From NCBI RefSeq assembly GCF_006345805.1, contig NW_021832711.1, forward strand, positions 1-29,824: DNA of 29,824 nucleotides, given 5' to 3'. Positions 3,214 to 26,614 of the stretch are shown here, one piece after another; positions within the stretch are counted from its first letter, which is position 1; each line of letters starts with the position of its first letter. The translations under genes were made by a program, and so were the position numbers. Source of the stretch: Octopus sinensis (taxonomy: Eukaryota). Under the pieces are notes generated by a model. That model searched no databases and was not told the DNA's origin. It saw only the letters and a list, made by a program, of their open reading frames with translations.

Positions 3214-3236
3214 TTACTTATATATATATATATATA

Positions 3237-4219
3237 TAAACGAGAAAAGAAGCAACAAGAATGGATTAGTTTTTAGTACAATTGTTTCATACAGACAGGC
3301 TTATTAAAAGTTGCAAATATTGCAGCAGATATGTATTTCCCTTAATGATAGCCTTTGACCCCTCAATCCCTTACCCTGTTCTCTCTTTAGATTCTCATAT
3401 CTGCTTTAGCTACTTCAGGTTGGCAATTAATAGCTGTTTACTGGTCAAAAATAATATTCTCCTTATAGTTCTTAGATTCCTGCAAATTCTAAGCCAGCCT
3501 GACCGTCTCCATATTTAAGAGACTTTTTTTCTGTGTAGGGCGTTACCTGCGACCCCTTCCCTCTCAGTTGTCACAGTATACTCTATGTGGGCGTTTTTTT
3601 CTTTTTTCTTTTTTCTTTTTTCTTTTTTCTTTCTTCTTTTTTCTTTTTTCTTCTTCTCTTTTTCTTTTTTTCTTTTTCTTTCTTTTCTTTTTTCTTTTCT
3701 TCTCTTTCCTTTTCTTTTCTTTGCTCCACAAAATTCCTTCAGCCTTTAGAAGTCATACCATAGCAGTTTTGTGAAGAGAATAGTAATGTGGCAAATACCT
3801 TATCATATAGCATGAAATTATACCCACCTCATTGTGGATTAACCATGGATAAATTCATCGTCTGTGAGTATGAAATACCTCCTCATATCTCTGGAAATTT
3901 ACACCTACACTATGGATGGATTAAACTTCTCTGTGAAGCTAATAAGCTTTTTTAAAACCTGTGATAAGACTGTGCATCATCATTAAAGAACTTTGGAAGT
4001 CTGTTTACAACCTGAATCTGCTTTTAATGAAATTATCTCCAATACTTCATGAGTGTAGCCTCACCCACTAAGATGTTTGGAGAACTCATATGTGTTTTAG
4101 CTGATGAGTACGGGACACTTTTATCTGCTGCAATATTTGCAACTTTTAATAAAGCCTGTCTTTGTATGAAACAATTGTACTAAAAACTAATCCATTCTTG
4201 TTGCTTCTTTTCTCGTTTA
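3237..4219. mobile_element. Non-autonomous TIR DNA transposon with ~95-bp TIRs and TA flanks (probably Tc1/mariner superfamily)
   Basis: taaacgagaaaagaagcaacaagaatgg...gcagcagata (3237-3331) is the reverse complement of ~4122-4219 apart from small indels; TA on both sides; no intact ORF. Confidence 0.8.
3594..3723. repeat. ~130-bp polypyrimidine (T/C) tract inside the TIR element (duplicate at ~21767-21896)
   Basis: Only T and C, (TTTTC)-like units. Confidence 0.95.
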
Positions 4220-4327
4220 TAATCACCCCACATTACTGTATTGGTTAACACCATATAGTCTTCTGGTGCATCTAAGTTAAGTACCGCATTCAAGTGAATT
4301 CATTAGAATTGACTTGAATCTTAATTG

Positions 4328-4332
<5 letters not shown>

Positions 4333-4371
<39 letters not shown>

Positions 4372-4424
4372 CACGCACACACACACACAGACACACACAC
4401 ACACACACATATATATATGTACAC
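4333..4424. repeat. (TA)n/(CA)n microsatellite (duplicate at ~22506-22597)
   Basis: Direct reading. Confidence 0.95.
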
Positions 4425-4532
4425 ACGATGGAGTGGACAGACGAACGAAGGGCACTCAACCAATATATTGGGAGTTACATGAATGGATCTTGATATTCAA
4501 GCGTGATCCTAGTCGTCAACCATTTTGAATTT

Positions 4533-6859
4533 GAATGACAGAAGTTGATTGTTATTAACGATTAAGAGTATGACGACAGGGTAATCCCCCGGTCCATCAG
4601 GAATTACTGCAGAGATGCTCAAAATATCTGGCAGTGTCGGCTATAGCCTAGTCACACGTAAAGTTAACCAGTTGATACACGAAGGAGTCATACCCAATGA
4701 CTGGTGTAGCAGTATAATAGTCAACTGCTACAAAGGTAAAGGTGATGCTTTAGATACAAATAATTACAGTGGTATCAAGCTGTTGGATCAGGTAATGAAG
4801 GTTACGGAGACGGCCATAGCCCAACTAATTAGGGAGAGAGTCAGATTGGATGAGATGCAGTTTGGTTTTGTGTCAGGGAAAAACACCACTGATGCTATAT
4901 TCCTGGTAAGACAGCTGCAGGAAAAATACCTAGCCAAAGATAAGCCCCTGTACCAGGCTTTCGTTGACATGGAGGAAGCCTTTGACAGGGTCCCCCGATC
5001 CCTTATCTGGTGATCATTGAGAAAACTAGGGATAGCGAATGGTTAGTGAGAGGCGTGCAAGCCATGTACAGGGACGCTGTCACTAAGGTGAGGGCTGGCA
5101 ACGAGTACACTGAAGAATTCAGGGTAGAGGTAGGGTTCAACCAGGGTTCAGTCCTCAGCCACCTCCTATTTATCAGAGTCCTCCAGCAATAACGGAGGAA
5201 TTCAAGACAGGATGCCCCTGGGACCTCCTTTATGCTGATGACCCTGTTCTAATTGCTGAGTCACTATCAGAACTAGAGGAAAAGTTTCAGGTGTGGAAAC
5301 AAGGATTAGAATCGAAGGGCCTTAGAGTCAACCTAGCTAAAACCAAAGTCCTAATAAGTAGGAAGGCAGGCAAACCACAAATCTCTTCAGGTAGATGGCC
5401 CTGCTCGATCTGTAGTAGAGGCGTAGGTAGAAACTCTATAAGATGTACCCAGTGTAAGCTATGGACACATAAGTGGTGCAGTAATATCAAAGGAAGGCTA
5501 ACGGGGAAGATAGTTTTGTATGTGGCAGATGCTCGGGAGCAATAAGCACTGAAAATGTGCAGAGAACAACTGCCACATTCCAGGGAGGTAAACTAGAAGT
5601 AGTTGATAGCTTCCGTTACCTAGGTGACCAGGTCAGTAGCGGGGGAGGGTGTGCTGAAAGTGTAGCTGCTAGAATAAAAATAGCTTGGGCAAAGTTCAGT
5701 GAGCTCTTACCCCTGCTGGTGACAAAGGGCCTCTCGCTCAGAGTAAAAGGTAGACTGTATGACGCTTGTGTACGAACAGCCATGCTACATGGCAGTGAAA
5801 CATGGGCTGTGACTGCTGAGGACATGCATAAGCTCGCAAGGAATGAAGCCAGTATGATCCGATGGATGTGTAATGTCAGTGTGCATACTCGACAGAGTGT
5901 GAGTACCATGAGAGAAATGTTGGACCTAAGAAGCATCAGATGTGGTGTGCAAGAGAGACGACTACGCTGGTATGGTCATGTGGCGAGAATGGATGAGGAT
6001 AGATGTGTGAAAAAGTGCCACACCCTAGCGGTTGAGTGAACCTGTGGAAGAAGTAGACCCTGGAAGACCTGGGATGAAGTGGTGAAGCACGACCTTCGAA
6101 ATTTAGACCTCACTAAAGAAATGACTAGTGACCGAGACTTTTGGAAATATGCTGTTCGTGAGAAGACCCGGCAAGCCAAATGAGACCATAATCTCGTGGC
6201 CTATGCCAGGAGCGTAACCAGCCCACTTATTCGTAACTTTTCCTTCTTTGGACACCAAAACTCTGCTTGCGAATACCTGTTGAGGCAAGTGAAATTAAAA
6301 TCAAAATCAAATTCGATGACTGGCGTCCGTGCTAGCGGGGTGCAAAGAGCACCATACGAGTGTGATCATTGACAGAGCGGCTAACCGGCTTCCGTGCAAG
6401 TGGCACTTAAAAGGCACCATTCGAATGTGATCGTTACCAGCGTCGCCTTACTGGTACTCGAGTCCCGTGCTAGTAGAGTATTAAGAGCACCATCCGAGCG
6501 TGATCGTTGCCAGAGTGGCTATCTGGCCTCCATGCCGGTGGCACGTAAAAGACACCATTTGAGTATGATCGTTACCAGCATCGCCTTACTGGCCCCTGTG
6601 CCGGTGGCATGTGTAAAAGATTCGAGCGAGGTCGTTGCCAGTACCGCCTGACTGGTCCCGTGCCGGTGGCACATAAAAGCACCCACTACACGCATCGGAG
6701 TGGTTGGTGTTAGGAAAGGCATCCAGCTGTAGAAACTCTGCCACATCAAGATTGAAGCCTGGTGCAGCCATCTGGTTCGCCAGCCCTTAGTCAAATCTTC
6801 CAACCCATGCTAGCATGGAAAGCGGGCGTTAAACGATAATGATTATGATGATGATGATG
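4533..6859 (+). mobile_element. 5'-truncated, frameshifted RTE-clade LINE (RT pseudogene plus 3' UTR with internal repeats and (GAT)n tail)
   Basis: Motifs SPGPSGITAEML, YKGKGD...NYSGIKLL, QFGF..GKNTTDAIF, AFVDMEEAFDRVPR, QGSVLS.LLF, LYADD, FRYLG, RRLRWYGHVARM; stops and frameshifts between fragments. Confidence 0.92.
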
Positions 6860-7149
6860 TACGTTGGGCTGAGATTCGTAGAGGAAGGTCACACGATATC
6901 GTGGTTTGATATTGGTGTATGGGTAAAAGTTAGTTGGAAAATGTCACATGAAGAACAGGAAATTGACCACGTGGAGTGCAGGAAATAGACGATGTGATGA
7001 TTAGAAATCGGTTTGGATATTGGGGTGTAAGTAGAAGGGGGTGGGCGTGAATATGCAAGTATATAGTTCTATATGTGGATGTGTAGACAGTCTCATATAA
7101 CTTTGCGTGTATCTGTATAGCGATGCGAATGAGCGTATCTATACATGGG

Positions 7150-7460
7150 AGCTCACGCACAAGTTTGCACACGCACACAAACACACACGCTTGGACGAAC
7201 ATGCAGGCGCACGTAAACACACATACACACATATAGGTAAGCATGCACACAAGCATGCGAATGCATATGTACATATGAATGAATACTCATGTGTGTATAT
7301 GGGCGTATGCGCGTGTATGTGTGTTTGTGTGTGTGCTCGCGTTTCTCCAAGCAAGTGTGTGTATATTTGTGTGTGTGTGTGTGTGTGTGTATGTGTGTGT
7401 GTGTGTGTGTATGTGTGTGTGTGTGTGTGTGTGTGAGTGTCTGTGTGTATTTGTGTGTAA
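7150..7460. repeat. CA/GT microsatellite mosaic (duplicate at ~25315-25620)
   Basis: Direct reading; source of several spurious ORFs. Confidence 0.9.
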
Positions 7461-7517
7461 GTCTGTGGGCGCCCATGTACATGAGCGCACATAAAGTTTG
7501 CTAAAAGTGACACCTAC

Positions 7518-7568
7518 CTTTATTTTGCATCATATTGTATATACTCAGTTTTGGTGTTTCCCCAGTCT
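7518..7568 (-). CDS. Cytoplasmic micro-exon class T, copy 1 (51 nt, phase 1-1): (E)TGETPKLSIYNMMQNK
   Basis: Identical to 25677-25727 including splice sites; carried by the 18-kb duplication. Confidence 0.7.
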
Positions 7569-7753
7569 CTGAGAAAAAAATAAGACAGTGAAAGGCATTT
7601 AAGTAAATTATAAATTAATAACATTTAATGAAAATATACAATAAATGTTCTAATACAATGAATATTTTATCATAAACATTCAGAAATTTAATGAAAATTT
7701 ATAAAATTGGAAAAATTCGATTTTTCTAATGCGCGTCGAGGTTTATTACTCAA

Positions 7754-8452
7754 GGGTCACCATAACCTTCTTTTTAAAGAACTTAGGTTTAGGGAAGTTT
7801 TTCGATGCTTCATTTTGGTGCAACCACTGCGAAGTTCGTTCTTTTTATTATTAGTGTACACAATCCACTTTTCATCGCAGGATACAATACGGTCGAGAAA
7901 TGCATCGGTCTAGTTACGGAGAAGAAGCGATGAACAAATTTTCTGATTTCAATTGAAATCGTAGGGTACCCATTTGTCGAAATGTTTTGAATTTCCGATC
8001 GCTGGCAGTTTTCTAGCAAACTTGAAATTTATTTACCAGTTCTCGAGTGATTTTATGTGGATCTTCCTCAATGACGGGTTTTAATTAAACGTCATCGATG
8101 ATACATGGGCGTTTACTACACTCATGTTCTACAGGTCTCAGGGCTCCACTGCGAAATCGTTGAAACCATTTTCGAGATGACCACTCACTGATCATTTCTT
8201 CACCAACATTTCGTTGATATCGCGAGCAGTTTCAGCTGATATACATCCATTTTTGAATTTGAATAGTAAAATTGTTTGAATATCGCGCTTTGACATTTCC
8301 ATTTCAGATGATTGCAACAGCGGTGAAAAAATATCGATATTAATCTATCGATGCATCTGGGAAGCCTAAGTCTGTATCATCAGACAATTGCCAAAACTTG
8401 TTTTAATAATCAAAAAATCTACAAAATAATGCTTACTTTTGACTCAATCTCA

Positions 8453-8455
<3 letters not shown>
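7754..8455 (-). mobile_element. Mariner transposon relic (left TIR plus N-terminal half of transposase, truncated after KKVMVT)
   Basis: ATG at 8302. With frameshifts: MEMSKRDIQTILLFKFKNG...AETARDINE...WFQRFRSG...KWVP...FLDRIVSCDEKWIVY...SQWL...PKPK..KKKVMVT. TIR-like atgagattgagtcaaaagtaagcatt at ~8429-8455 abuts (TA)n. Confidence 0.88.
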
Positions 8456-8597
<142 letters not shown>

Positions 8598-8865
8598 CGC
8601 CTGGCCCTCGTGCCGGTGGCACATAAAAAGCACCATCCGTTCGTGGCCGTTTGCCACCTCTGTCTGGCACCAGTGCGGGTGGCACGTAAAAAGCACCCAC
8701 TACAGTCACGGAGTGGTTGGCGTTAGGAAGGGCATCCAGCCGTAGAAACACTGCCAGATTTGACTGGGCCTGATGACGCCTTCTGGCTTCACAGACCCCA
8801 GTAGAACCGTCCAACCCATGCTAGCATGGAAAACGGACGCTAAATGATGATGATGATGATGATGA
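8598..8865 (+). mobile_element. SINE or 5'-truncated RTE 3'-UTR copy
   Basis: gtgccggtggcac..aaaagcacc, ggagtggttggcgttaggaagggcatccagc, aacccatgctagcatggaa and (GAT)n tail, all shared with the LINE end at 6644-6859. Confidence 0.85.
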
Positions 8866-8876
8866 TATATATATAA

Positions 8877-9130
8877 TTTATAGAAGGAGCTTCTACAGGA
8901 CTAGAACTGTTTCATTCAAAAGAAATCATCAGGAAGCTTGGTGATAGAATAGTTTTGGCATTTATACATTTAGGCAGATTTAAGTGGTGGTGGTGGGGGG
9001 GACTTTTTGGGGTAGGCATGGCGCAAACTGTCTTTCTTAGGGGAGTGGTCAAAAGAATCAGTGATAAAGTAGATAAAAGAATAAATAGAATAATAGAATA
9101 GAGTTTTAGGTAAATAAGAAGACTATCGCT

Positions 9131-9465: not shown

Positions 9466-9493
9466 CTGGTATTTGTTCATATATATATATATA

Positions 9494-9766
9494 TCATCAT
9501 CATCATCATCATCGTTTAACGTCCGTTCTCCATGCTAGCATGGGTTGGACGGTTCGACCGGGGATCTGGGAAGCCAGAAGGCTGCACCAGGCTCCAGTCT
9601 TATCTGGCAGGGTTTCTACATATGGATGCCCTTCCTAACGCCAACCACTCCGTGAGTGTAGTGGGTGCTTTTTACGTGCCACCTGCACAGGTGCCAGGCG
9701 AGGCTGGCAACGGCCACGGTTGGATTGGTGTATTTTATGTGCCACCGGCACGGAAGCCAGACGAGG
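9494..9766 (-). mobile_element. SINE or RTE 3'-UTR copy, minus strand
   Basis: (CAT)n followed by the reverse complement of the same tail. Confidence 0.85.
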
Positions 9767-10099
9767 CATGAATGTTTTAACATGAATGTTTTAACATGCA
9801 ATTTTAACCAACATTCAGAAAGTTAATGAAAAATTTTAAAAACTGAAGAAAATCTACATTTTAAAATGGCTGGCGAGTATAAAAATTATAGTTAGGCTTG
9901 ATTCAGCTCGACTCAACTTTTGTTTGGTCAAGCACTATAAGGTTTTCACCAGTAGCTTTTATCGTTTAATTCATTCATTATTTTCTTAACCCATGAAGAA
10001 ATCATATTGCCAAATGTGTTATGAGGAGGTCAATAAGGAATGCATGATTAAATGTCAAGATATCAAATGAATCTTTTTCAAAAGTATTGATTCTATTTA

Positions 10100-11495
10100 A
10101 CACTTTAACCTTCTTCATATTCCATAGCCTTGTTATTTCGTACTTAAGAGGGTAGTATCTCTCACTGTTTTCGCCTTCCTTTTTGACAATTCCCGAGTCG
10201 AAGGAGCATGCAGTATCAACTATATAGCACATAAGGTTAACCTTGTCCACTAACACCAGGTCCGGTCTGTCAAGCTCTAGCACCTGAACTATTTGGATTG
10301 GGGCATCCCAGAGGATTTTACTAGTCTCAGACACCTCCATGTTCCCCGTTATGTGCTCATTCCACATCTTGCCTCTCTCTAGTCCCCACTTTTCGCACAG
10401 TTTCCAATGTAACATGTTCAGTACCTGATTGTGTGGCCACAACTGGTAATGTTTTGGGGCAGGTCTAGGGCATTCTTTCGTGATATGAGCAATGGTTTCA
10501 TCGACTCTTTTACAGATTTCTCATTCCTAACGTTGACCCTGTGTTTCCTGGCCAAATCTTGGTCTTGGGCTGCCAGTATAGTGCTCTCTGTCTCTTTTAT
10601 TAGTGTTCCTTTCATCAGTCAATCCCACCTATTTATTCCAGCAAATTCTGTTATGGTTAGATGGAATTCATTGTGTAGGCCCTTGTTGCTTAATTCTTCA
10701 TGTCCTTTTTGTAGTTCCTCCTTTATTTCCCCTTTTGCTCCACTCTCAATACTCCTTCATCCTTAATTGTCATTAGCAAGGTTTCCTTTCTTTCGGTGAG
10801 GTATCTCATTAAGCTCTCGACTTCGATAAGCACTCAGTCTTCCACACTTATCAATCCGCTTCCTCCATTTGCTCTCTTCATGTATTGGCGATCAGTGTCC
10901 ACACATGGAGGATGGGCTCCATGCAACGTTAGGAGCTTTCTAGACTTCATGTCAATCACCTTAAACTTCTCCTCTGTCACAGGGTACGATCATGTCAATC
11001 AATTTACGGACTATATTGTTTTGGTCTTTCACAACAATATCTGATTTATTTGCTTTGAGGGTCTGATCTGTACAACTGCAAAGTCCAAAAGAATAGTTAT
11101 ATTTTCTGGCTCATTTACAGCCACAGGGTGGTGCTTATACCATTTGTCAAGTTTTTATTTTATAGTGCCAACACATTATCCAATGTAGATATTGACCAAC
11201 CCTGTCATTTCCTGATTTGTACACTACAGGTGCTAAAACTTTACACCCAGACATTAGCTGGTCCACTGTATCAATCTCACCTTTAGCCCTGATCTCTGTA
11301 GACACGAATAGTTGTGATTCTGGTTTACATCAGCTTTTTTGCTATGGGCCACATATTTGCCATGCTGAAGTTTTTCTTCCCACCCATCAGCCAATTGTTC
11401 AAACGCATTTGACTTTGCTATTGATTTCACCTTCTTTGCAACTACAGCTTCCGCACTTCCATCATGCTGTTCAACCTGATTATTATGCATAGACT
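10100..11495 (-). mobile_element. Decayed R4/Dong-like (RLE) LINE composite of two fused fragments, copy 1
   Basis: Motifs WEEKLQHGKY, TVDQLMSGCKVLA...YLHW, KWYKHHP, YMKRANGG.GLISVED, KETESTILAAQDQ, LHWKLC, RPDLVLVDK...IVDTAC (PD-(D/E)xK nuclease), YYPLKYEITRLW; stops and frameshifts. Confidence 0.82.
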
Positions 11496-12236
11496 CACTA
11501 ATATTATTATCATCATTATCCTTATTATGCACACAACAGATTAGACGCTTGCAAAAGTAGGATTTCCTATATCGGGCAAATATGACAAATATGACAAATA
11601 TGACAAATATTCACCTGTCCCGTTTCTTTCCATAAATCAGACAGTCCTCCAGTTTTCAGTGACTAGCAGATAAGCGATTAGCTTTTAACCCAGACAGAAC
11701 GGAGGCTATGCTTTCAGATATTTTCTTATCATGTTTTAAGAATAACTCAATACGTTTACCATTAATTCCGAGAAATTCTCACGTACAAGTAAGCATTGCT
11801 AGCAATAAGTTTCAACGCAACGCATAGTAACGACGCAGTACTTTTCCTAATAATGACATGGGAACGAATCTCCTCACAGCATCCGGGCCACAGACAGATA
11901 TCCAGTGATTGTGCATTTATTTAATGCTTGTCTGTGGCTCGTACGCGGCTGCCTAGTGTTAACCTGGCTTGCTTTATCAGTATAAAGAAGAACCAAAGAA
12001 ATCACTCATTGATTTCATAAATGATACAATGTGAAATTATAAATAATAAAGGTGGCTTATTCGCAAATTTGCAAAAAAAAGCAGAACAATAGACCCGACT
12101 AAAGTGACTAAGGGCACCACATGTAGGATTTGTCATCCTCCACAATCATTGTATTAAAGCCACTTAAGAAACTCATACAACACATGGAATGCGCTTAATG
12201 TTTCCTCACAAGAAATTATCTTAAAGTGATTCCTAC

Positions 12237-12287
12237 CTTCATAGGGTACCAGAACATATTCACTCCTGTCGAGTAATTGACCATTCT
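12237..12287 (-). CDS. Cytoplasmic micro-exon class N, copy 1 (51 nt, phase 1-1): (E)NGQLLDRSEYVLVPYE
   Basis: ctgtcttatttgtttccag|AGAATGGTC...CCCTATGAAG|gtaggaatca. Open frame; SEYVLV fits the ITIM consensus (S/I/V/L)xYxx(I/V/L). Confidence 0.75.
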
Positions 12288-13329
12288 CTGGAAACAAATA
12301 AGACAGGGACAGACATTAAAGAAAATTATGAATAATTCAAATTTATTCAATATGTGTGTGTGTGTGTGTGTGTGTGTATAACATGCTATAATACAATGTA
12401 TATCTATACATATAAATTGGACATGGGCGATTCTTTCCTGTATACTCCACACACACACAGACCATTACATTCACACACACACACATACACAATAAATATA
12501 CACTCACTCATACTGAGAAACGTATGCGCGCGTTCACACATACATACATGCACACACATGATTATATACCCATACGCAAACATATGGATGTACGCTTGCG
12601 CACCTTCACTTTAAACGTTCTACAGTGCATCCAAATGCACCCCAATTATTAGGAGACCCCCATTTAATAGGAAAGCCTCACATACTGACATACCACATCT
12701 GGTATTTGTTCATGGAAGAATTCAATCTTCTCCGTGTCTGTTTAACTACAACGTTTCCTGCTCCGCTGAACTAAATATAGAGGCCAGCGGAAAACACCAA
12801 AACTTCCTGAGCTTCTAAGGACTCCTTATAAGGAGCGCAAATCCACACAAGCATACACTTTATACTTGTAAGTATGCATGAGAGTGCAAGCAGCTTACAA
12901 TAATGAACTTTTACTTATTATCTTTTTGTTGTTTTTGCTTTTTGAAAATTTCATTTATTTCTTTCAATTTTTGTTTAATTTTTTGATTTTTATTGAATCT
13001 TGGTTGTATTGTTTTTTTTGTTTTTTGTTTTTTTGTTGGTTAGTTATTTTTAGCGTTTTGACAGAAAAATGTCATTCTAAAATTGTTTTTTAACGTAAGC
13101 GTGCCCAAGCAAGTCGAATGCTTACACAGAGCGGGTTTTACAGCCACATCATCCAATCTGCTAGTTTTAACATAAAGTACATACAAATTTAATCAATCTG
13201 AGAAAGTTAATAGAAATTATGCATCGTTTTTTTTTCTACTGTGCGGCGAAGTCAGGTAATTATTGTCGAGGCTCGTTTGTGACCGACTCAACATTTATTT
13301 AGGTCAAGGACGTTTACTGCTTGAAAATT

Positions 13330-13425
13330 GGAGTCTTGGCAGCACTTCAGCTGGTCACCTCTGTCAAACCGTCTAACGCATGCCAGCATGGAAAGCTGAT
13401 GTTAAATTATGAAGATGATGATGAG
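13330..13425 (+). mobile_element. Short diverged SINE/RTE tail fragment at the end of duplication unit B1
   Basis: aaaccgtctaacgcatgccagcatggaaagctgatgttaaattatgaagatgatgatg. Confidence 0.65.
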
Positions 13426-13466
13426 GTAGAGTATACTGGACGATATTAGCTAAAGTGATAAAGAAT

Positions 13467-14945
13467 TTCATTTCATTTCATTTGAGTTTGAGTCCATGCT
13501 CAGGCCAAGTCGAAGACTCCACCCTCAGAGTCTGGTGTGGTTACCAGGTTGTATTCTCTGTTTAATTTTGACATGTGTAGGAGCGAGTTTGAGTCAGTTT
13601 GTGCTCGTTGTGTATATCCTGGGAGATGGGGTTCATCTCTAATGGTGCTTAAGTATCTATCCAGCTGCAATTTGAATGATTCCACACTGCATCCTGATAG
13701 ATTTCTGACATGTACCGGAATGGAGTTGAATAGGTTGTGCTCCTCGAACCAACAGACTTGATTCTCGCAGGGTTTTTGCTGCCTGGCCAGCCTTTTTGTT
13801 GATTGGTGGCAGCTGGCAGCGTCTTCCGTGGCGCAGTGAGTGGTAGGTTTGATACCAAAGTTTGGCACCTTCTGCTCTATCATTTTCCAAATGTATATAA
13901 TTCGGTATCGCTCAAATCTTCTTTCTATTGAGTACATCCTCGGTTTTGAGTCTTTGCCAATAGTCCAGGTCCCTCGTTTCTGAGAAGTATGAGGTAAAAT
14001 TTCTTTGGAGCGATTCCATCTAGATAGTTGGCCCTTTGTTGTTGGTGACCACAACTGAGAACAGTAGTCAATCCTCGGAAGTATCATACTGTTCCAGAGG
14101 GTTTTCATTGTTGTGGTATCTCTTGATTTGAAGGTGCGAAGATCCACCCGCTGTACTTTCTTGCAGTAAGACAGACTGAGTCAAGGTGTTCTCTGAATTT
14201 TAGGTTGGTTCCCATGTGGATGCCTAAATCTTTCACATACTGTTTTTCCATTATTTGTTGTCCTGATGGTTTCTGTAGTTTGTTGTATTTTTCAGATCTT
14301 GATCTGTTCCGTACGAATTAGTTCAAACTTCTTATCATTGAACAACATGTTTGTTTGTTTTTTCCTGCCATTTATATGGTGGTCAGGTCCTTTTGTAAGG
14401 CCTCTGTATCCACCTCGTCTTTGATTTGTCTCATGACCCTGGTGTCATCAGCAAAGGATGAGACGTTGCGGGTTGTATCTTCATCTATGTCGAGATGAGG
14501 ATGAGAAACAGATTGGCCGAGTACTGTACCCTGAGAACACTGCTGGTCACAGGTGATGGTGTTGAATGGGTTCCATTCACAGTGACTGTTTTGAGTTCTA
14601 TTTGTAAGGAACTCATGTATCCATGTACCAACTTTTCCTCCTACTCCTAGCTTTCGAAGTTTGGACCCATGATGCCATGATCTACCTTGTCAAATGCCTT
14701 GGCAAAGTCGAGGTAAATAACATCTGTGTTGTATCCATCCTCTAGATTTTCTAGGATTTGGTCATGGTGTTCCAGTAGTTGGGAAAGACATGATCTACCT
14801 AACCTGAATCCCGCTGGTGCAATTCATCATGTTGGATTCCAGGAACTCAACCATTTTCCACGAACTATTCTTTCGAAGACCTTGATAATGTGTGATGTCA
14901 GTGAGATTGGTCGGTAGTTCTTTGGTTTTGATTTGCTGTCCCTGA
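13467..14945 (-). mobile_element. 5'-truncated CR1-group LINE (RT pseudogene)
   Basis: NYRPISLTSHIIKVFE, DVIYLDFAKAFDKVDHG, QGTVLG, FADDTR, LPRIDYCSQLWSP, LFNSIP; (AAATG)n-type 3' tail near 13467-13485. Confidence 0.88.
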
Positions 14946-15096
14946 AATGGATTATTTTTTAAATGAGGAACATGTATTACAGGTAGGATGTGTCAGCGTC
15001 AACAATCATTGCCATAAAACGACAGAAAAACCTGATGCAAAAGTTGGAATTCTCTTGATATTGCCTCGCATGAATTTAATTTTAAATGACACCTAC

Positions 15097-15147
15097 CTTC
15101 ATTTGATACTGGTCTGGAATCAGCCTCCTCTAATATTATGCTAGGCC
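15097..15147 (-). CDS. Cytoplasmic micro-exon class P (51 nt, phase 1-1): (G)PSIILEEADSRPVSNE
   Basis: ctgtcttatttatcgttag|GGCCTAGCA...TCAAATGAAG|gtaggtgtca. Same length, phase and flanking intron motifs as classes N and T. Confidence 0.72.
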
Positions 15148-15549
15148 CTAACGATAAATAAGACAGGGACAGACATTTAACAAATATTAAACAATGAACA
15201 TTTAGCAATATTTATAATAAAGTTTATAATAACATGAATGTTTTAACATGCAATTTTAACCAACATTCAGAAAGTTAATGAAAATTTTTTAAAAACTGAA
15301 GAAAATCTACATTTTGAAATGGCTGGCGAGTATAAAAAATATAGTTAAGGCTTGATTCAGCTCGACTCAACTTTTGTTTGGTCAAGCACTAAAGGTTTTC
15401 ACCAGTAGCTTTTATCGTTTAATTCATTCATTATTTTCTTAACCCATGAAGAAATCATATTGCCAAATGTGTTATGAGGAGGTCAATAAGGAATGCATGA
15501 TTAAATGTCAAGATATCAAATGAATCTTTTTCAAAAGTATTGATTCTAT

Positions 15550-16945
15550 TTAACACTTTAACCTTCTTCATATTCCATAGCCTTGTTATTTCGTACTTAA
15601 GAGGGTAGTATCTCTCACTGTTTTCGCCTTCCTTTTGACAATTCCCGAGTCGAAGGAGCATGCAGTATCAACTATATAGCACATAAGGTTCACCTTGTCC
15701 ACTAACACCAGGTCCGGTCTTCAAGCTCTAGCACCTGAACTATTTGGATTGGGGCATCCCAGAGGATTTACTAGTCTCAGACCCCTCCACGTTCCCCGTT
15801 ATGTGCTCATTCCACATCTTGCCTCTCTCTAGTCCCCACTTTTCGCACAGTTTCCAATGTAACATGTTCAGTACCTGATTGTGTGGCCACAACTGGTAAT
15901 GTTTTGGGGCAGGTCTAGGGCATTCTTTCGTGATATGAGCAATGGTTTCATCGACTCTTTTACAGATTTCTCATTCCTAACGTTGACCCTGCGTTTCCTG
16001 GCCAAATCTTGGTCTTGCGCTGCCAGTATAGTGCTCTCTGTCTCTTTTATTAGTGTTCCTTTCATCAGTCAATCCCACCTATTTATTCCAGCAAATTCTG
16101 TTATGGTTAGATGGAATTCATTGTGTAGGCCCTTGTTGCTTAATTCTTCATATCCTTTTTGTAGTTCCTCCTTTATTTCCCTTTTTGCTCTGCTCTCAAT
16201 ACTCCCTCATCCTTAATTCTCATTAGCAAGATTTCCTTTCTTTCGGTGAGGTATCTCATTAAGCTCTCGACTTCGATAAGCACTCAGTCTTCCACACTTA
16301 TCAATCCGCTTCCTCCATTTGCTCTCTTCATGTATTGGCGATCAGTGTCCACACATGGAGGATGGGCTCCATGCAACGTTAGGGGCTTTCTAGACTTCAT
16401 GTTAATCACCTTTAGCTTCTCCTCTGTCACAGGGTACGATCATGTCAATCTATTTACAGACTATATTGTTTTGGTCTTTCACAACAATATCTGGTTTATT
16501 TGCTTTGAGGGTCTGATCTGTACTACTGCAAAGACCAAAAGAATAGTTATATTTTCTGGCTCATTTACAGCCACAGGGTTGTGCTTATACCATTTGTCAA
16601 GTTTTAAGTTTATAGTGCCAACACATTATCCAATGTAGATATTGACCAACCCTGTCATTTCCTGATTTGTACACTACAGGTGCAAAAACTTTACATCCAG
16701 ATATTAGCTGGTCCACTGTATCAATCTCACCTTTAGCCCTGATCTCTGTAGACACGAATAGTTGTGATTCTGGTTTACATCAGCTTGTTTGCTACGGGCC
16801 ACATATTTGCCATGCTGAAGTTTTTCTTCCCACCCATCAGCCAATTGTTCAAACGCATTTGACTTTGCTATTGATTTCACCTTCTTTGCAACTACAGCTT
16901 CCGCGCTTCCATCATGCTGTTCAACCTGATTATTATGCATAGACT
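15550..16945 (-). mobile_element. Decayed R4/Dong-like LINE composite, copy 2
   Basis: Paralog of 10100-11495 within unit B2. Confidence 0.82.
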
Positions 16946-17635
16946 CACTAATATTATTATCATCATTATTTTTATTATACACACAACAGATTAGGCTCTT
17001 GCAAAAGTAGGATTTCCGATATCGGGCTACAACATGACAAATATTCACCTGTCACGTTTCTTTCCATAAATCAGACAGTCCTCCAGACAGAACGGAGGCT
17101 GAGCTTTCAGATATTTTCTTATCATGTTTTAAGAATAACCCAATACGATTACCATTAATTCCGAGAAATTCTCACGTACAAGCAAGCATTGCTAGCAATA
17201 AGATTCAACGCAATGCATAGTAACGACGCAGTACTTTTCCTAATAATGACATGGGAACGAATCTCCTCACAGCATCCGGACCACAGACAGATATCCAGTG
17301 ATTGTGCATTTATTTAATGCTTGTCTGTGGCTCGTACGCGGCTGCCTAGTGTTAACCTGGCTTGCTTTATCAGTATAAAAGAAGAACCAAAGAAATCACT
17401 CATTGATTTCATAAATGATATACAATGTGAAAATTATAAATAATAAAGGTGGCTTATTCGCAAATTTGCAAAAAAAAAGCAGAACAGTAGACCCGATAAA
17501 GTGACTAAGGGTCCAACATGTAGGATTTGTCATCCTCCACAATCATTGTATTAAAGCCACTTAAGAAACTCATCCAACATTTATGCAATGCGCTTAATGT
17601 TTCCTCACAAGAAATTATCTTAAAGTGATTCCTAC

Positions 17636-17683
17636 CTTCATAGTTTACCGGAACATATCCATGCTTGAGTAATTGACCATTCT
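17636..17683 (-). CDS. Cytoplasmic micro-exon class N, copy 2 (48 nt, phase 1-1): (E)NGQLLKHGYVPVNYE
   Basis: ctgtcttatttgtttctag|AGAATGGTC...AACTATGAAG|gtaggaatca. Frame preserved despite a 3-nt length difference from the paralog at 12237. Confidence 0.75.
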
Positions 17684-17761
17684 CTAGAAACAAATAAGAC
17701 AGGGACAGACATTAAAGAAAATTATGAATAATTCAAATTTAATCAATATATATAGATATAT

Positions 17762-17844
<83 letters not shown>

Positions 17845-17970
17845 ATATATATAACGTGCTATAATACAATGTATATCTATACATATAAATTGGACATGGG
17901 CGATTCTTTCCTGTATATTTTCTTGTCTTGGGATTCACGGTCAAACAGCTGGATGGAATTGCGCGAAAAA

Positions 17971-18113
17971 TTAATGTGTAGAATGAGCCGGTGGTGTTGC
18001 TTGGCTTTGTGTTTCTTCCGTAGCTCCCATGGTTACCGAGATAATTGTATCTATATGCTTGGCTTTTCTTATCATTTTATCCCGCAATGGTAAATATTTT
18101 ATCGGAGACAACT
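17971..18113 (-). CDS. Candidate phase-1 exon (possibly terminal): (E)LSPIKYLPLRDKMIRKAKHIDTIISVTMGATEETQSQATPPAHSTH*
   Basis: ttttcag|AGTTG acceptor with a poor pyrimidine tract. Only the phase-1 frame stays open (47 codons). An internal donor TCG|gtaacc at 18037 would give a 77-nt phase 1-0 exon. Confidence 0.25.
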
Positions 18114-19434
18114 CTGAAAATATTTTATCTTATTATTTCCCTTAATTTTGGTATTCGCTCTTCTCCATTGTATTTATTTAAATCTGATCGAACAGATTAA
18201 GTTTTTATCTTTTCAAAAATAATTAGTAGTTATCGATCAGCAATCACTCTTATTTATCGTTTTCACTGCACTCACCGTTCTTTTACAAAAAATGACGTGA
18301 TGCAATGCTGCTTTATAAGGATAATATGAACACGCTACTCCACACACACACAGACTATTACATACACACACACACATAAATATATGTTCACGCATACTGA
18401 GAAACGTATGCGCGCGTTCACACATACATACATACATGCACACTCATGATTATATACCCATACGCAAGCATATGGATGTACGCTTGCGCACCTTCACCTT
18501 AAACATTCTACAGTACATCCAAGTGCACCCCAATTATTAGGAGACCCCCATTTAATAGGGAAGCCTCACATACTGACATACCACATCTGGTATTTGTTCA
18601 TGGAAGAATTCAATCTTGTCCGTGTCTGTTTAACTACAACGTTTCCTGCTCCGCTGAACTAAATATAGAGGCCAGCGGAAAACCCCAAAACTTCCTGAGC
18701 TTCTAAGGAATCCTTATAAGGAGCGCAAATCCACACAGGCATACACTTTATAATTGTAAGTAAGTATGCATGAGAGTGCAAGCAGCTTACAATAATGAAC
18801 TTTTACTTATTATCTTTTTGTTGTTTTTGCTTTTTGAAAATTTCATTTATTTCTTTCAATTTTTGTTTAATTTTTTGATTTTTATTAAATCTTGGTTGTA
18901 TTGTTTTTTTTGTTTTTTTTTTTTGTTGGTTAGTTATTTTTAGCGTTTTGACAGAAAAATGTCATTCTAAAATTGTTTTTTAACGTAAGCGTGCCCAAGC
19001 AAGTCGAATGCTTACACAGAGCGGGTTTTACAGCCACATCATCCAATCTGCTAGTTTTAACATAAAGTACATACAAATTTAATCAATCTGAGAAAGTTAA
19101 TAGAAATTATTCATGGTTTTTTTTCTACTGCGCGGCGAAGTCAGGTAATTATTGTCGAGGCTCGTTTGTGACCGACTCAACATTTATTTGGGTCAAGGAC
19201 GTTTACTGCTTGAAAATTAAATTAAATTAATAATTGTTTTCTCAAATTCTAAAGACATCATATTTGCCAATAAGCAATACCTTATTAAATGGCAGGATAT
19301 CAAACGAATCTTTCTCGAACGCGTTGCTTATATTGAATATTCTAGCGTCAGGTTCCAAATAAACTGTCTTATACCCGTCTAATGCCCGTCGGTCCGGCTA
19401 GTCTTATAAAATTATGATTCAATGTGAAAATATT

Positions 19435-19885
19435 TCATTATTGTTGTTGTCGCTGTTGTTGTTGCCTTTGCACAGCTTCTAACGCTAGAGGTATACTACG
19501 GTGTTAGCTGTTCACTACCAGTGAACTAAGATAACACCTCTTATTTTTCGAGCACCTTCCGGAGTATTCGAGCGGTTCCAAGCAGTGCTGTTTTCTGCAA
19601 GTGCTCCACCCTTATTGCAGCCCCTGTATGCATAAATATAGCACACATGTGAACGTGTAAGCGTGTTGTCTATCAGATGTGACACATTGCCGGTTACAAT
19701 ACACATAGGCATTCTTTTAGCCTACACATGATGTCACGCCCGATGGCTAAGTGAGCCCCTGACAGAAAGTGGGGGCTGGTAGAATGTAGGACTGAAAAAC
19801 ACAGCGTGCTGCCCAATCTGGGAATCAGAACGTAGATCTAGCGATAGTGAGTGCAAAACTTAAGCATTTGGCCACGCTCCTTTAC
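19435..19885 (-). mobile_element. Duplicate of the SINE at 1262-1712
   Basis: Identical at offset 18173. Confidence 0.55.
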
Positions 19886-19895
19886 AAAAGAATAG

Positions 19896-19938
<43 letters not shown>

Positions 19939-20061
19939 TGTGTGTGTCTGTGTGTGATTATGTTTGAGTATGTATACATACATACATACATGAATACATT
20001 CATATATATATGCACATACATACGTATATATATAAATACATATGTGTGTGTGAGCATATGA

Positions 20062-20114
<53 letters not shown>

Positions 20115-20502
20115 TATAAAAAGTAAAAGTAAAAGTAAAAGAATCAAAAAGAAGAGTAAGTCCAGTTAGGCAGCTTTTTAATCCCTACTAATATATCGAT
20201 ACATACAGATGTTCGTATATGCAGTATTTAAAGTTACATTTAAATAACTTTTTGTAACGATTTACCTGTATAAGAAGATCTATATGTATCTCCTCAGGCG
20301 ATACTCAGTTGGTGTCCCCATTAAGTAATTCTAGATTTCCATGCTACAGCATCCATTATGACTAGAATTGCTAGCATATCATACGAATACTACCGGCTAT
20401 TTTGGGAATTCTAAGGGTGAACGAGCTCTATTTGTACTCGTATACGTTCTTAATAGAACACACCTCAACTGACTATATATGAATATATATACTTATATAT
20501 AT

Positions 20503-21386
20503 TGATAAAACGGTAAGATAACAAAAGAAAGAAAGAGACCTCAATATTATGTAAATAGAGGAAATTTATCTATACAATAATATGTTACTTTACTCGGTAG
20601 TCAAGATAAAACTCTGAGTTTCAGATGCCGAAGTGGAAATCCACAACACCATCTCTTCGGTTATCTGGCTATTTGAAAACGCTATGAAAAAATACCGTTA
20701 AATAAAGGGAAATTACTGTCTTATAACTCTGCTTGCCTGCGTACTTATACATCGCTCGTATTTTTCGTCATAAAAATTATATAAAAATACATAAAAAATA
20801 TATAAAAATATATAAATATATATAAATTCTTCTTGGGACATAACATAGAAAGCATGTTCTATCTGTTTTCTTTAGGGGACCAAGAACGTAACAGAAATTT
20901 AGTCACATGTGGGCATGATCCGAAAAGCTCTGTCCTTGTATTTAGACATGTAGTAGGGTCTAAGCTGCTTTTCCAGATAAGCCATCTCTCCATGTCGCAT
21001 AGACCGCACCTTCCGCTGCCGTTGGTATAGGGCTTACATCTGGCCAAAATCTTCCATTGTATGTTATAATCGACACCTTTATCTCTTAAAGACCAAATAT
21101 GATTAGATAATTGTGTCGCTTTTCTTTTGTTCCAGTGCCTAAAGCTCAAAGTGTGGTTATTGAACCTGGCCTTGAAATTACCCTCTGTAAGGCCCACGTA
21201 TTTCTTCGTCGAAACGGTGTCTTTAGTGGTTATAGAGTTTGGCCAGATGTAAGCCCTATACCAACGGCAGCGGAAGGTGCGGTCTATGCGACATGGAGAG
21301 ATGGCTTATCTGGAAAAGCAGCTTAGACCCTACTACATGTCTAAGACAGTAATTTCCCTTTATTTAACGGTATTTTTTCATAGCGT
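20503..21386 (-). mobile_element. Duplicate Penelope-like fragment
   Basis: Identical at offset 18173 (ORF 20859-21197). Confidence 0.88.
20604..20666 (-). ncRNA. Duplicate hammerhead motif
   Basis: Identical at offset 18173. Confidence 0.62.
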
Positions 21387-21409
21387 TTACTTATATATAT
21401 ATATATATA

Positions 21410-22392
21410 TAAACGAGAAAAGAAGCAACAAGAATGGATTAGTTTTTAGTACAATTGTTTCATACAGACAGGCTTATTAAAAGTTGCAAATATTGCAGCA
21501 GATATGTATTTCCCTTAATGATAGCCTTTGACCCCTCAATCCCTTACCCTGTTCTCTCTTTAGATTCTCATATCTGCTTTAGCTACTTCAGGTTGGCAAT
21601 TAATAGCTGTTTACTGGTCAAAAATAATATTCTCCTTATAGTTCTTAGATTCCTGCAAATTCTAAGCCAGCCTGACCGTCTCCATATTTAAGAGACTTTT
21701 TTTCTGTGTAGGGCGTTACCTGCGACCCCTTCCCTCTCAGTTGTCACAGTATACTCTATGTGGGCGTTTTTTTCTTTTTTCTTTTTTCTTTTTTCTTTTT
21801 TCTTTCTTCTTTTTTCTTTTTTCTTCTTCTCTTTTTCTTTTTTTCTTTTTCTTTCTTTTCTTTTTTCTTTTCTTCTCTTTCCTTTTCTTTTCTTTGCTCC
21901 ACAAAATTCCTTCAGCCTTTAGAAGTCATACCATAGCAGTTTTGTGAAGAGAATAGTAATGTGGCAAATACCTTATCATATAGCATGAAATTATACCCAC
22001 CTCATTGTGGATTAACCATGGATAAATTCATCGTCTGTGAGTATGAAATACCTCCTCATATCTCTGGAAATTTACACCTACACTATGGATGGATTAAACT
22101 TCTCTGTGAAGCTAATAAGCTTTTTTAAAACCTGTGATAAGACTGTGCATCATCATTAAAGAACTTTGGAAGTCTGTTTACAACCTGAATCTGCTTTTAA
22201 TGAAATTATCTCCAATACTTCATGAGTGTAGCCTCACCCACTAAGATGTTTGGAGAACTCATATGTGTTTTAGCTGATGAGTACGGGACACTTTTATCTG
22301 CTGCAATATTTGCAACTTTTAATAAAGCCTGTCTTTGTATGAAACAATTGTACTAAAAACTAATCCATTCTTGTTGCTTCTTTTCTCGTTTA
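21410..22392. mobile_element. Duplicate of the TIR element at 3237-4219
   Basis: Identical at offset 18173. Confidence 0.8.
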
Positions 22393-22500
22393 TAATCACC
22401 CCACATTACTGTATTGGTTAACACCATATAGTCTTCTGGTGCATCTAAGTTAAGTACCGCATTCAAGTGAATTCATTAGAATTGACTTGAATCTTAATTG

Positions 22501-22544
<44 letters not shown>

Positions 22545-22705
22545 CACGCACACACACACACAGACACACACACACACACACATATATATATGTACACACG
22601 ATGGAGTGGACAGACGAACGAAGGGCACTCAACCAATATATTGGGAGTTACATGAATGGATCTTGATATTCAAGCGTGATCCTAGTCGTCAACCATTTTG
22701 AATTT

Positions 22706-25031
22706 GAATGACAGAAGTTGATTGTTATTAACGATTAAGAGTATGACGACAGGGTAATCCCCCGGTCCATCAGGAATTACTGCAGAGATGCTCAAAATAT
22801 CTGGCAGTGTCGGCTATAGCCTAGTCACACGTAAAGTTAACCAGTTGATACACGAAGGAGTCATACCCAATGACTGGTGTAGCAGTATAATAGTCAACTG
22901 CTACAAAGGTAAAGGTGATGCTTTAGATACAAATAATTACAGTGGTATCAAGCTGTTGGATCAGGTAATGAAGGTTACGGAGACGGCCATAGCCCAACTA
23001 ATTAGGGAGAGAGTCAGATTGGATGAGATGCAGTTTGGTTTTGTGTCAGGGAAAAACACCACTGATGCTATATTCCTGGTAAGACAGCTGCAGGAAAAAT
23101 ACCTAGCCAAAGATAAGCCCCTGTACCAGGCTTTCGTTGACATGGAGGAAGCCTTTGACAGGGTCCCCCGATCCCTTATCTGGTGATCATTGAGAAAACT
23201 AGGGATAGCGAATGGTTAGTGAGAGGCGTGCAAGCCATGTACAGGGACGCTGTCACTAAGGTGAGGGCTGGCAACGAGTACACTGAAGAATTCAGGGTAG
23301 AGGTAGGGTTCAACCAGGGTTCAGTCCTCAGCCACCTCCTATTTATCAGAGTCCTCCAGCAATAACGGAGGAATTCAAGACAGGATGCCCCTGGGACCTC
23401 CTTTATGCTGATGACCCTGTTCTAATTGCTGAGTCACTATCAGAACTAGAGGAAAAGTTTCAGGTGTGGAAACAAGGATTAGAATCGAAGGGCCTTAGAG
23501 TCAACCTAGCTAAAACCAAAGTCCTAATAAGTAGGAAGGCAGGCAAACCACAAATCTCTTCAGGTAGATGGCCCTGCTCGATCTGTAGTAGAGGCGTAGG
23601 TAGAAACTCTATAAGATGTACCCAGTGTAAGCTATGGACACATAAGTGGTGCAGTAATATCAAAGGAAGGCTAACGGGGAAGATAGTTTTGTATGTGGCA
23701 GATGCTCGGGAGCAATAAGCACTGAAAATGTGCAGAGAACAACTGCCACATTCCAGGGAGGTAAACTAGAAGTAGTTGATAGCTTCCGTTACCTAGGTGA
23801 CCAGGTCAGTAGCGGGGGAGGGTGTGCTGAAAGTGTAGCTGCTAGAATAAAAATAGCTTGGGCAAAGTTCAGTGAGCTCTTACCCCTGCTGGTGACAAAG
23901 GGCCTCTCGCTCAGAGTAAAAGGTAGACTGTATGACGCTTGTGTACGAACAGCCATGCTACATGGCAGTGAAACATGGGCTGTGACTGCTGAGGACATGC
24001 ATAAGCTCGCAAGGAATGAAGCCAGTATGATCCGATGGATGTGTAATGTCAGTGTGCATACTCGACAGAGTGTGAGTACCATGAGAGAAATGTTGGACCT
24101 AAGAAGCATCAGATGTGGTGTGCAAGAGAGACGACTACGCTGGTATGGTCATGTGGCGAGAATGGATGAGGATAGATGTGTGAAAAAGTGCCACACCCTA
24201 GCGGTTGAGTGAACCTGTGGAAGAAGTAGACCCTGGAAGACCTGGGATGAAGTGGTGAAGCACGACCTTCGAAATTTAGACCTCACTAAAGAAATGACTA
24301 GTGACCGAGACTTTTGGAAATATGCTGTTCGTGAGAAGACCCGGCAAGCCAAATGAGACCATAATCTCGTGGCCTATGCCAGGAGCGTAACCAGCCCACT
24401 TATTCGTAACTTTTCCTTCTTTGGACACCAAAACTCTGCTTGCGAATACCTGTTGAGGCAAGTGAAATTAAAATCAAAATCAAATTCGATGACTGACGTC
24501 CGTGCTAGCGGGGTGCAAAGAGCACCATACGAGTGTGATCATTGACAGAGCGGCTAACCGGCTTCCGTGCAAGTGGCTCTTAAAAGGCACCATTCGAATG
24601 TGATCGTTACCAGCGTCGCCTTACTGGTACTCGAGTCCCGTGCTAGTAGAGTATTAAGAGCACCATCCGAGCGTGATCGTTGCCAGGGTGGCTATCTGGC
24701 CTCTGTGCCGGTGGCACGTAAAAGACACCATTTGAGTATAATCGTTACCAGCATCGCCTTACTGGCACCTGTGCCGGTGGCATGTGTAAAAGATTCGAGC
24801 GAGGTCGTTGCCAGTACCGCCTGACTGGTCCCGTGCCGGTGGCACATAAAAGCACCCACTACACGCTCGGAGTGGTTGGTGTTAGGAAGGGCATCCAGCT
24901 GTAGAAACTCTGCCACATCAAGATTGAAGCCTGGTGCAGCCATCTGGTTCGCCAGCCCTTAGTCAAATCTTCCAACCCATGCTAGCATGGAAAGCGGGCG
25001 TTAAACGATAATGATTATGGTGATGATGATG
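22706..25031 (+). mobile_element. Duplicate RTE-clade LINE
   Basis: ORF fragments 22788-24212 identical to 4615-6039; 3' UTR diverged from about 24496. Confidence 0.92.
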
Positions 25032-25530
25032 TACGTTGGGCTGAGATTGGTCGAGGAAGGTCACACGATATCGTGGTTTGATATTGGTGTATGGGTAAAA
25101 GTTAGTTGGAAAATGTCACATGAAGAACAGGAAATTGACCACGTGGAGTGCAGGAAATAGACGATGTGATGATTAGAAATCGGTTTGGATATTGGGGTGT
25201 AAGTAGAAGGGGGTGGGCGTGAATATGCAAGTTCTATATGTGGATGTGTAGACAGTCTCATATAACTTTGCGTGTATCTGTATAGCGATGCGAATGAGCG
25301 TATCTATACATGGGAGCTCACGCACAAGTTTGCACACGCACACAAACACACACGCTTGGACAAACATGCAGGCGCACGTAAACACACATACACACATATA
25401 GGTAAGCATGCACACAAGCATGCGAATGCATATGTACATATGAATGAATACTCATGTGTGTATATGGGCGTATGCGCGTGTATGTGTGTTTGTGTGTGTG
25501 CTCGCGTTTCTCCAAGCAAGTGTGTGTATA

Positions 25531-25562
<32 letters not shown>

Positions 25563-25676
25563 GTGTGTGTGTGTGTGTGTGTGTTGTGTGTGTGAGTGTC
25601 TGTGTGTATTTGTGTGTAAGTCTGTGGGCGCCCATGTACATGAGCGCACATAAAGTTTGCTAAAAGTGACACCTAC

Positions 25677-25727
25677 CTTTATTTTGCATCATATTGTATA
25701 TACTCAGTTTTGGTGTTTCCCCAGTCT
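25677..25727 (-). CDS. Cytoplasmic micro-exon class T, copy 2 (51 nt, phase 1-1): (E)TGETPKLSIYNMMQNK
   Basis: ctgtcttatttttttctcag|AGACTGGGG...CAAAATAAAG|gtaggtgtca. Open frame, splice context shared with the other micro-exons, in frame with the TM exon. Confidence 0.72.

Positions 25728-26608: not shown

Positions 26609-26614
<6 letters not shown>
25913..26614 (-). mobile_element. Duplicate mariner relic
   Basis: Colinear with 7754-8455 with a few substitutions and indels; ATG at 26461. Confidence 0.88.

Follow-up and report, generated by a model that had tools for sequence, protein, structure and literature searches.

Coding segments that outpace their own introns are known from crotaline snake venom PLA2, conotoxins and abalone lysin, and the substitutions in them are mostly amino-acid-changing. 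Micro-exons of at most 51 nt are known from vertebrate neurons, where they encode disordered or interaction regions, are flanked by strongly conserved intronic sequence and are themselves deeply conserved single copies. In cephalopods we know of no described hypervariable receptor families beyond the protocadherins, and to our knowledge the innate recognition molecules of these animals are poorly known. The micro-exon genes (MEG) of schistosomes are built of short symmetric exons that are alternatively included, lie in loci rich in transposable elements and show reported accelerated evolution (Philippsen et al. 2015, PMC4350168). The fester co-receptors (FcoR) of Botryllus are type I membrane proteins of polymorphic, copy-variable multigene loci, in which the tyrosine motifs of the tail, among them immunoreceptor tyrosine-based inhibitory motifs (ITIM) and hemi-immunoreceptor tyrosine-based activation motifs (hemITAM), are switched by alleles and by alternative splicing of tail exons, and a role in allorecognition is documented (PMC11507803). 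Here we analyse a 29,824-nt stretch of Octopus sinensis DNA, hereafter the window, which is the whole of the unplaced contig VCDQ01000338.1 (reversed; RefSeq NW_021832711.1) and carries the gene model LOC118761365, and in particular two of its micro-exons, N1 and N2, which have diverged from each other faster than the introns around them.

All coordinates are given on the plus strand of the window, whereas N1, N2, the other cassettes and the transmembrane (TM) exon are read on the minus strand. Placed after the TM exon are four phase-1 cassette types of about 51 nt, named E7/E25, N, E15 and R, which have homologous intron ends and unrelated interiors. The acceptor-side and the donor-side flank of N are each present in five copies in the window, all of them on the minus strand. 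Besides N1 and N2, these flanks enclose three further sites with the same splice context, a length of 51 nt and an open frame: E15 (15097-15147, minus strand), an annotated exon encoding (G)PSIILEEADSRPVSNE between N-like acceptor and donor flanks; E7 (7518-7568, minus strand), which encodes (E)TGETPKLSIYNMMQNK and is the last exon of the 3'-partial model; and E25 (25677-25727, minus strand), which is identical to E7, lies in an 18.2-kb duplicate and is unused by the model. An earlier sequence-only reading of the window had overlooked that N belongs to a larger cassette array. The 97.6-kb chromosomal locus of a related gene, LOC115232395 (L002), holds seven cassettes with the same flanks. The cassettes of the window measure 51, 48, 51 and 51 nt and those of L002 51, 48, 54 and 51 nt; all are of phase 1-1, and since every length is a multiple of three the frame is kept in any combination.

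Between the old cassette types the exon bodies are 44-52% identical, which is the level of shuffled sequence, against 72-83% for the 45 nt upstream and 56-74% for the 45-90 nt downstream. At the level of RefSeq annotation the cassettes are alternatively included, as isoforms X1, X2 and X3 of LOC115232395 differ by a single cassette, X2 being without one N and X3 without one R. A mutually exclusive exon cluster of the Dscam/Mhc type is ruled out, since X1 holds E7-N-E7-N-E15-R-R consecutively, and an introner-like origin of the conserved intron ends is unlikely given that exon length and phase are constant. We have little doubt that tandemly duplicated cassette micro-exons of 48-54 nt, arranged as an array, encode the cytoplasmic tail. 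N2 and E25 are intact, with good splice sites and open frames, and yet both are absent from the RefSeq model LOC118761365. The annotation should thus be used with caution, as the model misses these two exons and its first exon may be a contig-edge artefact.

Set beside the systems named above, the octopus gene is like the schistosome MEG in its runs of very short symmetric exons, multiples of three in length and alternatively included to give protein variants, in a locus rich in transposable elements and in signs of accelerated evolution. Unlike the MEG, which encode secreted or gland proteins and whose coding sequence is mostly micro-exons, it has only its cytoplasmic tail built in this manner and its product is a transmembrane protein; furthermore, its cassettes are recognisable tandem duplicates with homologous intron ends, found in a cephalopod lineage with no host-parasite interface. 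With FcoR it shares membership of a copy-variable membrane-protein family, cytoplasmic tyrosine motifs and an alternatively spliced tail, yet there is no sequence relationship, and FcoR tails are not described as equal-length duplicated micro-exon arrays. As in the venom and gamete genes, divergence is several-fold higher in coding segments than in the introns next to them; here, however, it affects a transmembrane anchor and an intracellular tail module rather than secreted toxins or proteins of gamete recognition. Like the neuronal micro-exons, the octopus exons are short and have conserved flanks, but their bodies are variable and they are tandem duplicates. Our literature search returned no cephalopod description of a TM-protein tail made of duplicated, alternatively included micro-exons with hyper-diverged single exons.

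N1 (12237-12287, minus strand, 51 nt, phase 1-1) encodes (E)NGQLLDRSEYVLVPYE and is an annotated coding exon of LOC118761365; N2 (17636-17683, minus strand, 48 nt, phase 1-1) encodes (E)NGQLLKHGYVPVNYE and is skipped by that model. The splice context of N1 reads ...ttatttgtttccag/AGAATGG...CTATGAAG/gtaggaatc and that of N2 ...gtttctag/.../gtaggaatc, so that in both a long polypyrimidine tract runs up to the acceptor (cag in N1, tag in N2) and the donor is AAG/gtagga. The conserved acceptor-side flank of N1 (12288-12352, minus strand, with the polypyrimidine tract AATGTCTGTCCCTGTCTTATTT...) has homologues at 17684-17748, 15148-15211, 7569-7635 and 25728-25794, and the conserved donor-side flank (12119-12236, minus strand, gtaggaatcacttt...) has homologues after N2, E15, E7 and E25. 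The descriptive part of the sequence-only reading was reproduced throughout. The 49 nt after the donor that it had called identical are so (12188-12236 and 17587-17635, 49/49), and the single difference it had counted in the 58 nt before the acceptor (12288-12345 and the N2 counterpart) is at 12290, acceptor position -3, where cag stands against tag. Its count of nine substitutions and a 3-nt gap for the exon interiors is what a codon alignment gives (nine substitutions and one codon gap), while a MAFFT nucleotide alignment gives seven substitutions and a 3-nt gap and other gap costs give five substitutions and two indels. Every one of the five changed codons alters the amino acid, as had been stated (nonsynonymous and synonymous differences by the Nei-Gojobori method, Nd 8.5 and Sd 0.5), and the splice sites, the frame and both tyrosines are indeed kept, N1 being found in XP_036355101.1 and the N2 type in XP_029658112.1. 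Immediately downstream of N1 the intron holds two small complex clusters, one at 12115-12118 (3 substitutions in 4 nt) and the other at 12177-12187 (3 substitutions and a 2-nt indel in 11 nt).

N1 and N2, two copies of one cassette type, are contained in two duplication units, B1 (9778-13329) and B2 (15230-19218), which differ at 2.6-2.9% of aligned sites (non-coding); the non-coding divergence of the segmental duplication that separates the two copies may be put at about 3-4%. No other 26-nt window of the 3.4-kb unit is as dense in changes as the exon core, which has seven events against five in the runner-up, and the scan probability of such a peak is between 0.009 (uniform rate) and 0.026 (high-rate half). 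An a-priori Poisson test on the 51-nt exon gives P = 0.002, and a Fisher test of the exon against the 1.7-kb N1 block gives P = 0.001 with seven substitutions and P = 0.02 with five. The claim that the exons diverge faster than their introns is therefore upheld, N1/N2 divergence being about 4-6-fold above that of the introns. As to non-coding peaks of comparable height, which the earlier reading had named as a check, no window of unit B is denser than the exon core, and smaller intronic clusters do exist. The caveat that gene conversion could have homogenised the introns is not needed, as the 1.6-kb N1 block is evenly about 4% diverged from the other copies. Taken alone, the excess of N1/N2 divergence is of moderate strength.

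A second exon of the same gene shows this pattern far more clearly. The TM exon (28622-28744, minus strand, 123 nt, phase 1-1), encoding (G)KNPTPISYTVIIVFVVLFPLLFILGCFLPWIIMKTRKYKR, differs from its counterpart in L002 by 14 substitutions in 123 nt, 13 nonsynonymous and one synonymous, which alter 10 of 40 residues, including Pro/Gly positions in the helix and a juxtamembrane R>C change. Its introns differ at 17 of 1980 sites (0.9%), so that the exon is about 13-fold higher (Fisher P = 3e-10). Over the whole contig we counted 301 substitutions in 29,627 nt (1.0%) against the best chromosomal counterpart. The most diverged 123-nt windows of the contig are microsatellites, followed by the TM exon and then the N1 region; the remaining windows hold at most eight substitutions, and those inspected are microsatellite or low-complexity sequence. 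N2 shows one nonsynonymous change in its 48 nt against the two chromosomal N exons (cNa and cNb), with 0-3 changes per about 450-500 nt in the flanks.

Compared with positions 37.4-65.6 kb of L002, the window is a mosaic of blocks of 95-99.7% identity in a different cassette order, TM-E7-N2-E15-N1-E7 in the window and TM-E7-N-E7-N-E15-R-R on the chromosome. Unit B2 is 99.5-99.7% identical to both the chromosomal Na and Nb units, and the same identity holds among N2, cNa and cNb over about 2.2 kb, with cNa and cNb matching N2 save for one nucleotide (L to V). Within B1, positions 9778-11652 share 98% identity with the chromosomal Na unit, and positions 11690-13329 about 95-96% with all other copies. 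The 1.6-kb N1 block matches N2, cNa and cNb at 95.8% each, which indicates that N1 is an older paralogous lineage. No N1-type exon is present in the 97.6 kb of L002. E15 and its counterpart at 63806-63859 of L002 are one in-frame codon apart (51 and 54 nt), L002 having an extra Asp. The contig may be either a haplotig (an allele) or a recent paralog.

Based on these data we propose that the excess is caused by adaptive diversification, that is, by selection for amino-acid change in a modular tyrosine-motif tail, a reading to which we give a probability of about 0.5. Relaxed constraint cannot lift an exon above the rate of its introns, so that selection, exon-limited transfer or, for N only, a chance cluster of complex mutations has to be called upon. 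Selection is favoured since the only divergence peaks outside repeats in 30 kb belong to two exons of one gene, and since the changes are overwhelmingly amino-acid changing and have no local donor. The earlier reading had gone as far as positive selection, and of this the excess of exon over intron stands, whereas selection itself is not established: the N1/N2 sample is tiny, as the earlier caveat rightly said (5-9 substitutions between two exons, depending on the alignment), the signal is sensitive to clustering, there is no outgroup, and only 0.5 synonymous changes are available for the ratio of nonsynonymous to synonymous rates.

Several observations weigh against selection. The N1/N2 signal amounts to about 4-8 mutational events and its significance is lost when adjacent changes are merged, P rising to 0.016, 0.05 and 0.37 as changes within 2-5 nt are counted as single events; tight multi-base changes are frequent in unit B, and two of them occur within the intron, at 50-120 nt from the donor. 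That the 107 flank nucleotides are nearly identical is unremarkable (P = 0.14), the lack of synonymous changes between N1 and N2 is not significant (P = 0.11), and the ratios of nonsynonymous to synonymous changes are compatible with neutrality (P 0.11-0.14). The all-nonsynonymous pattern of N1/N2 is thus expected under neutrality and carries no weight as evidence, and with so few synonymous changes omega = 1 is not rejected. With N2, cNa and cNb grouping in a single tight clade, the N1/N2 changes are unpolarised as to direction and rate per lineage, and the old cassette types are too saturated to polarise them. Conserved flanks around unrelated bodies in these old types could reflect splicing constraint on the flanks together with neutral decay of a disordered tail. 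Finally, the E7/E25, R and E15 cassettes show no excess divergence, so that any acceleration must have been episodic and exon-specific.

The main rival, possible though on the unlikely side, is that the N1 core and the TM exon of the window were copied as exon-limited patches from diverged, unsampled members of the family, by short-tract gene conversion or by recombination with reverse-transcribed spliced mRNA, the introns being kept at the low background. Such transfer would suit a family that is multi-copy and mosaic, as seen in the 95-99.7% patchwork between window and chromosome and in the identical and diverged exons that lie side by side in LOC115232395 and LOC115210431, and a genome rich in LINE elements bearing reverse transcriptase; moreover, the changes are gathered in a single contiguous patch within the exon, in N1 as well as in the TM exon. 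However, neither the window nor the 97.6-kb chromosomal locus contains a donor for the N1 core or for the TM variants, and a search of the same sequences for a templated-mutation or ectopic donor of the N1 or N2 core likewise found none. Two independent patches would both have to end within exon borders, and with nonsynonymous to synonymous ratios of 13:1 and 8.5:0.5 the donor itself would need to have undergone amino-acid-biased divergence. We regard it as rather improbable that no selection acted. The N1/N2 divergence would then be an accidental grouping of a few complex mutations, such as a GG>TT tandem change and a delins, in a disordered-tail exon under weak constraint, and the conserved flanks of the older cassettes would be held by splicing constraint alone. 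Closely packed multi-base changes recur in the unit (12115-12118, 12177-12187 and 11520-11547 being examples), and the event-collapsed tests (P = 0.05-0.37) and the neutral-compatible ratio agree with this explanation. Nevertheless the exon core remains the densest window of the unit, the 14 substitutions scattered across 100 nt of the TM exon, set against a background of 0.9% (P = 3e-10), are beyond what a few complex events can produce, and the top two non-microsatellite peaks of the 29.8-kb contig both fall on coding exons.

An assembly artefact, in which a chimeric or mis-polished haplotig would account for both the divergence peaks and the odd cassette order, we consider very improbable. 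The contig is unplaced, contains an 18.2-kb tandem repeat of 99.56% identity and departs from the chromosomal cassette order, all of which would suit such an artefact; on the other hand, long-read errors are mostly indels rather than substitutions clustered in frame, divergence in the N1 block is even, at about 4% across 1.6 kb, and N1 and the TM exon retain open frames and intact splice sites. A bolder reading would be an octopus-restricted receptor family in which single exons, membrane anchor and tail cassettes alike, are diversified far above the neutral rate while introns stay near-identical. This we entertain as a long shot; the cause could be an exon-targeted mechanism (cDNA-templated patch conversion or local hypermutation) or strong balancing or diversifying selection on alleles, coupled to combinatorial splicing of the cassettes. 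If true, it would give cephalopods a counterpart to hypervariable self/non-self or immune-type receptors, one in which the variation is located in the signalling tail.

Under the favoured reading of adaptive diversification, the tail would act as a disordered string of short docking motifs: YNMM in E7, YVPV and YE in N2, and SEYVLV and YEE in N1. SEYVLV fits the ITIM pattern S/I/V/LxYxxI/V/L and lies downstream of the TM segment and of the KTRKYKR that follows it, while HGYVPV of N2 misfits the ITIM at position -2; YNMM is a YxN/YxxM pattern, and E15 and R are without tyrosine. By consensus-pattern match only, each cassette looks like one short linear motif module. The change from KHGYVPV to DRSEYVLV in N1 would thus have created an ITIM-type motif with both tyrosines retained, and selection for altered residues would adjust both the docking motifs and the membrane anchor in a receptor family that is young and variable in copy number. 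The immune or allorecognition role suggested by the earlier reading is speculation. As a lineage-restricted, copy-variable membrane protein with a tail made of exchangeable micro-exon modules that bear SH2-type tyrosine motifs, and with single exons that outpace their introns, the gene would be a tractable case for the origin of new signalling motifs by exon duplication, in-frame cassette splicing and rapid amino-acid change.

The host gene was reached through the concatenated cassette peptides, which as a query returned XP_036355101.1, 'uncharacterized protein LOC118761365, partial [Octopus sinensis]'; a protein search with the N1 and N2 peptides alone gave no match. The model reads MASQTIDD / GKNPTPISYTVIIVFVVLFPLLFILGCFLPWIIMKTRKYKR / GPSIILEEADSRPVSNE / ENGQLLDRSEYVLVPYE / ETGETPKLSIYNMMQNK, corresponding to a short N-terminus, the TM exon (28622-28744), E15, N1 and E7. 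When this protein was used as the query of an exhaustive profile-free search, a single related cluster came up, comprising LOC115232395 X1-X3 and LOC115210431. We have little doubt that the gene whose 3' part lies on the contig is a paralog or an allele of LOC115232395, which encodes an uncharacterised membrane protein of the single-pass type. The annotated first coding exon (MASQTIDD + G; 29186-29210, minus strand) is 600 nt from the contig end and sits in what is intron 5 of the chromosomal gene, the intron before the TM exon, where a 16-nt gap in the chromosomal copy (29173-29188) deletes the donor of this exon. Truncation of the contig has probably produced the MASQTIDD start as an artefact, and ectodomain exons are likely to lie upstream in the true gene.

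In LOC115232395 X1 the ectodomain of about 210 aa comes from ordinary exons and is rich in cysteines and sequons, with an internal two-fold repeat of about 80 aa that has no Pfam match. The TM helix spans residues 219-253, and only the tail is built from micro-exons, reading ETGETPKLSIYNMMQNK / ENGQVLKHGYVPVNYE / ETGET... / ENGQV... / GPSIILDEEADSRPVSNE / GRERESQPNENIPASIE (twice) / GPFHGTCSMIIAIH. For the family we detected no Pfam domain, no PDB sequence match and no homolog outside O. sinensis. A single-sequence AlphaFold2 (AF2) model, which is weak evidence, is confident for the TM helix only; the tail (residues 255-383) has a predicted local distance difference test score (pLDDT) below 50, and the ectodomain shows low-confidence beta strands only. 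The chromosomal paralogs LOC115232395 (10001-36206 of L002 for this comparison) and LOC115210431 differ by 18 residues, all in ectodomain exons 3-4, exons 1, 2 and 5 being identical.

Other identities of the N exons were considered. GYVPVNYE of N2 was the top match of a home-made position-specific scoring matrix of the SH3 C-terminus among 37,118 nine-residue six-frame peptides, and in a chimera the N2 peptide added 5-11 bits to Pfam SH3 scores. An SH3 C-terminal exon is nonetheless rejected, as in the real proteins the peptide directly follows other cassettes and a TM helix, and neither the remaining half of an SH3 domain nor a Pfam SH3 match is present. A snoRNA or miRNA host was rejected as well, no Rfam family reaching its gathering score in the window and only microsatellite-driven sub-threshold matches occurring near N1. 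Nor is the N exon part of a transposon, since the 5'-truncated LINE of unit B begins about 700 nt downstream of N1.

The window also contains an 18,174-bp tandem repeat of 99.56% identity (1-8484 and 18175-26644) that ends in microsatellite sequence; it implies more cassette copies beyond the contig start, though the duplication may be either real or an assembly effect. Degenerate retrotransposon fragments (reverse-transcriptase C-terminal) and a mariner-like transposase fragment are found at 4615-6039 (plus strand), 9900-11560, 13400-15100 and about 8100-8400 (all minus strand), their closest proteins being hypothetical proteins of Octopus bimaculoides and O. vulgaris, and one such element makes up the GC-rich block at 5000-7000. 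Both orientations are found of a repeat of about 200-280 nt, probably SINE-like, at 8609-8885, 9476-9752 and 6660-6855 (and 24819-25027). B1 is interrupted by one of its copies at the left end, where a cassette flank starts (9773-9836) with no exon after it.

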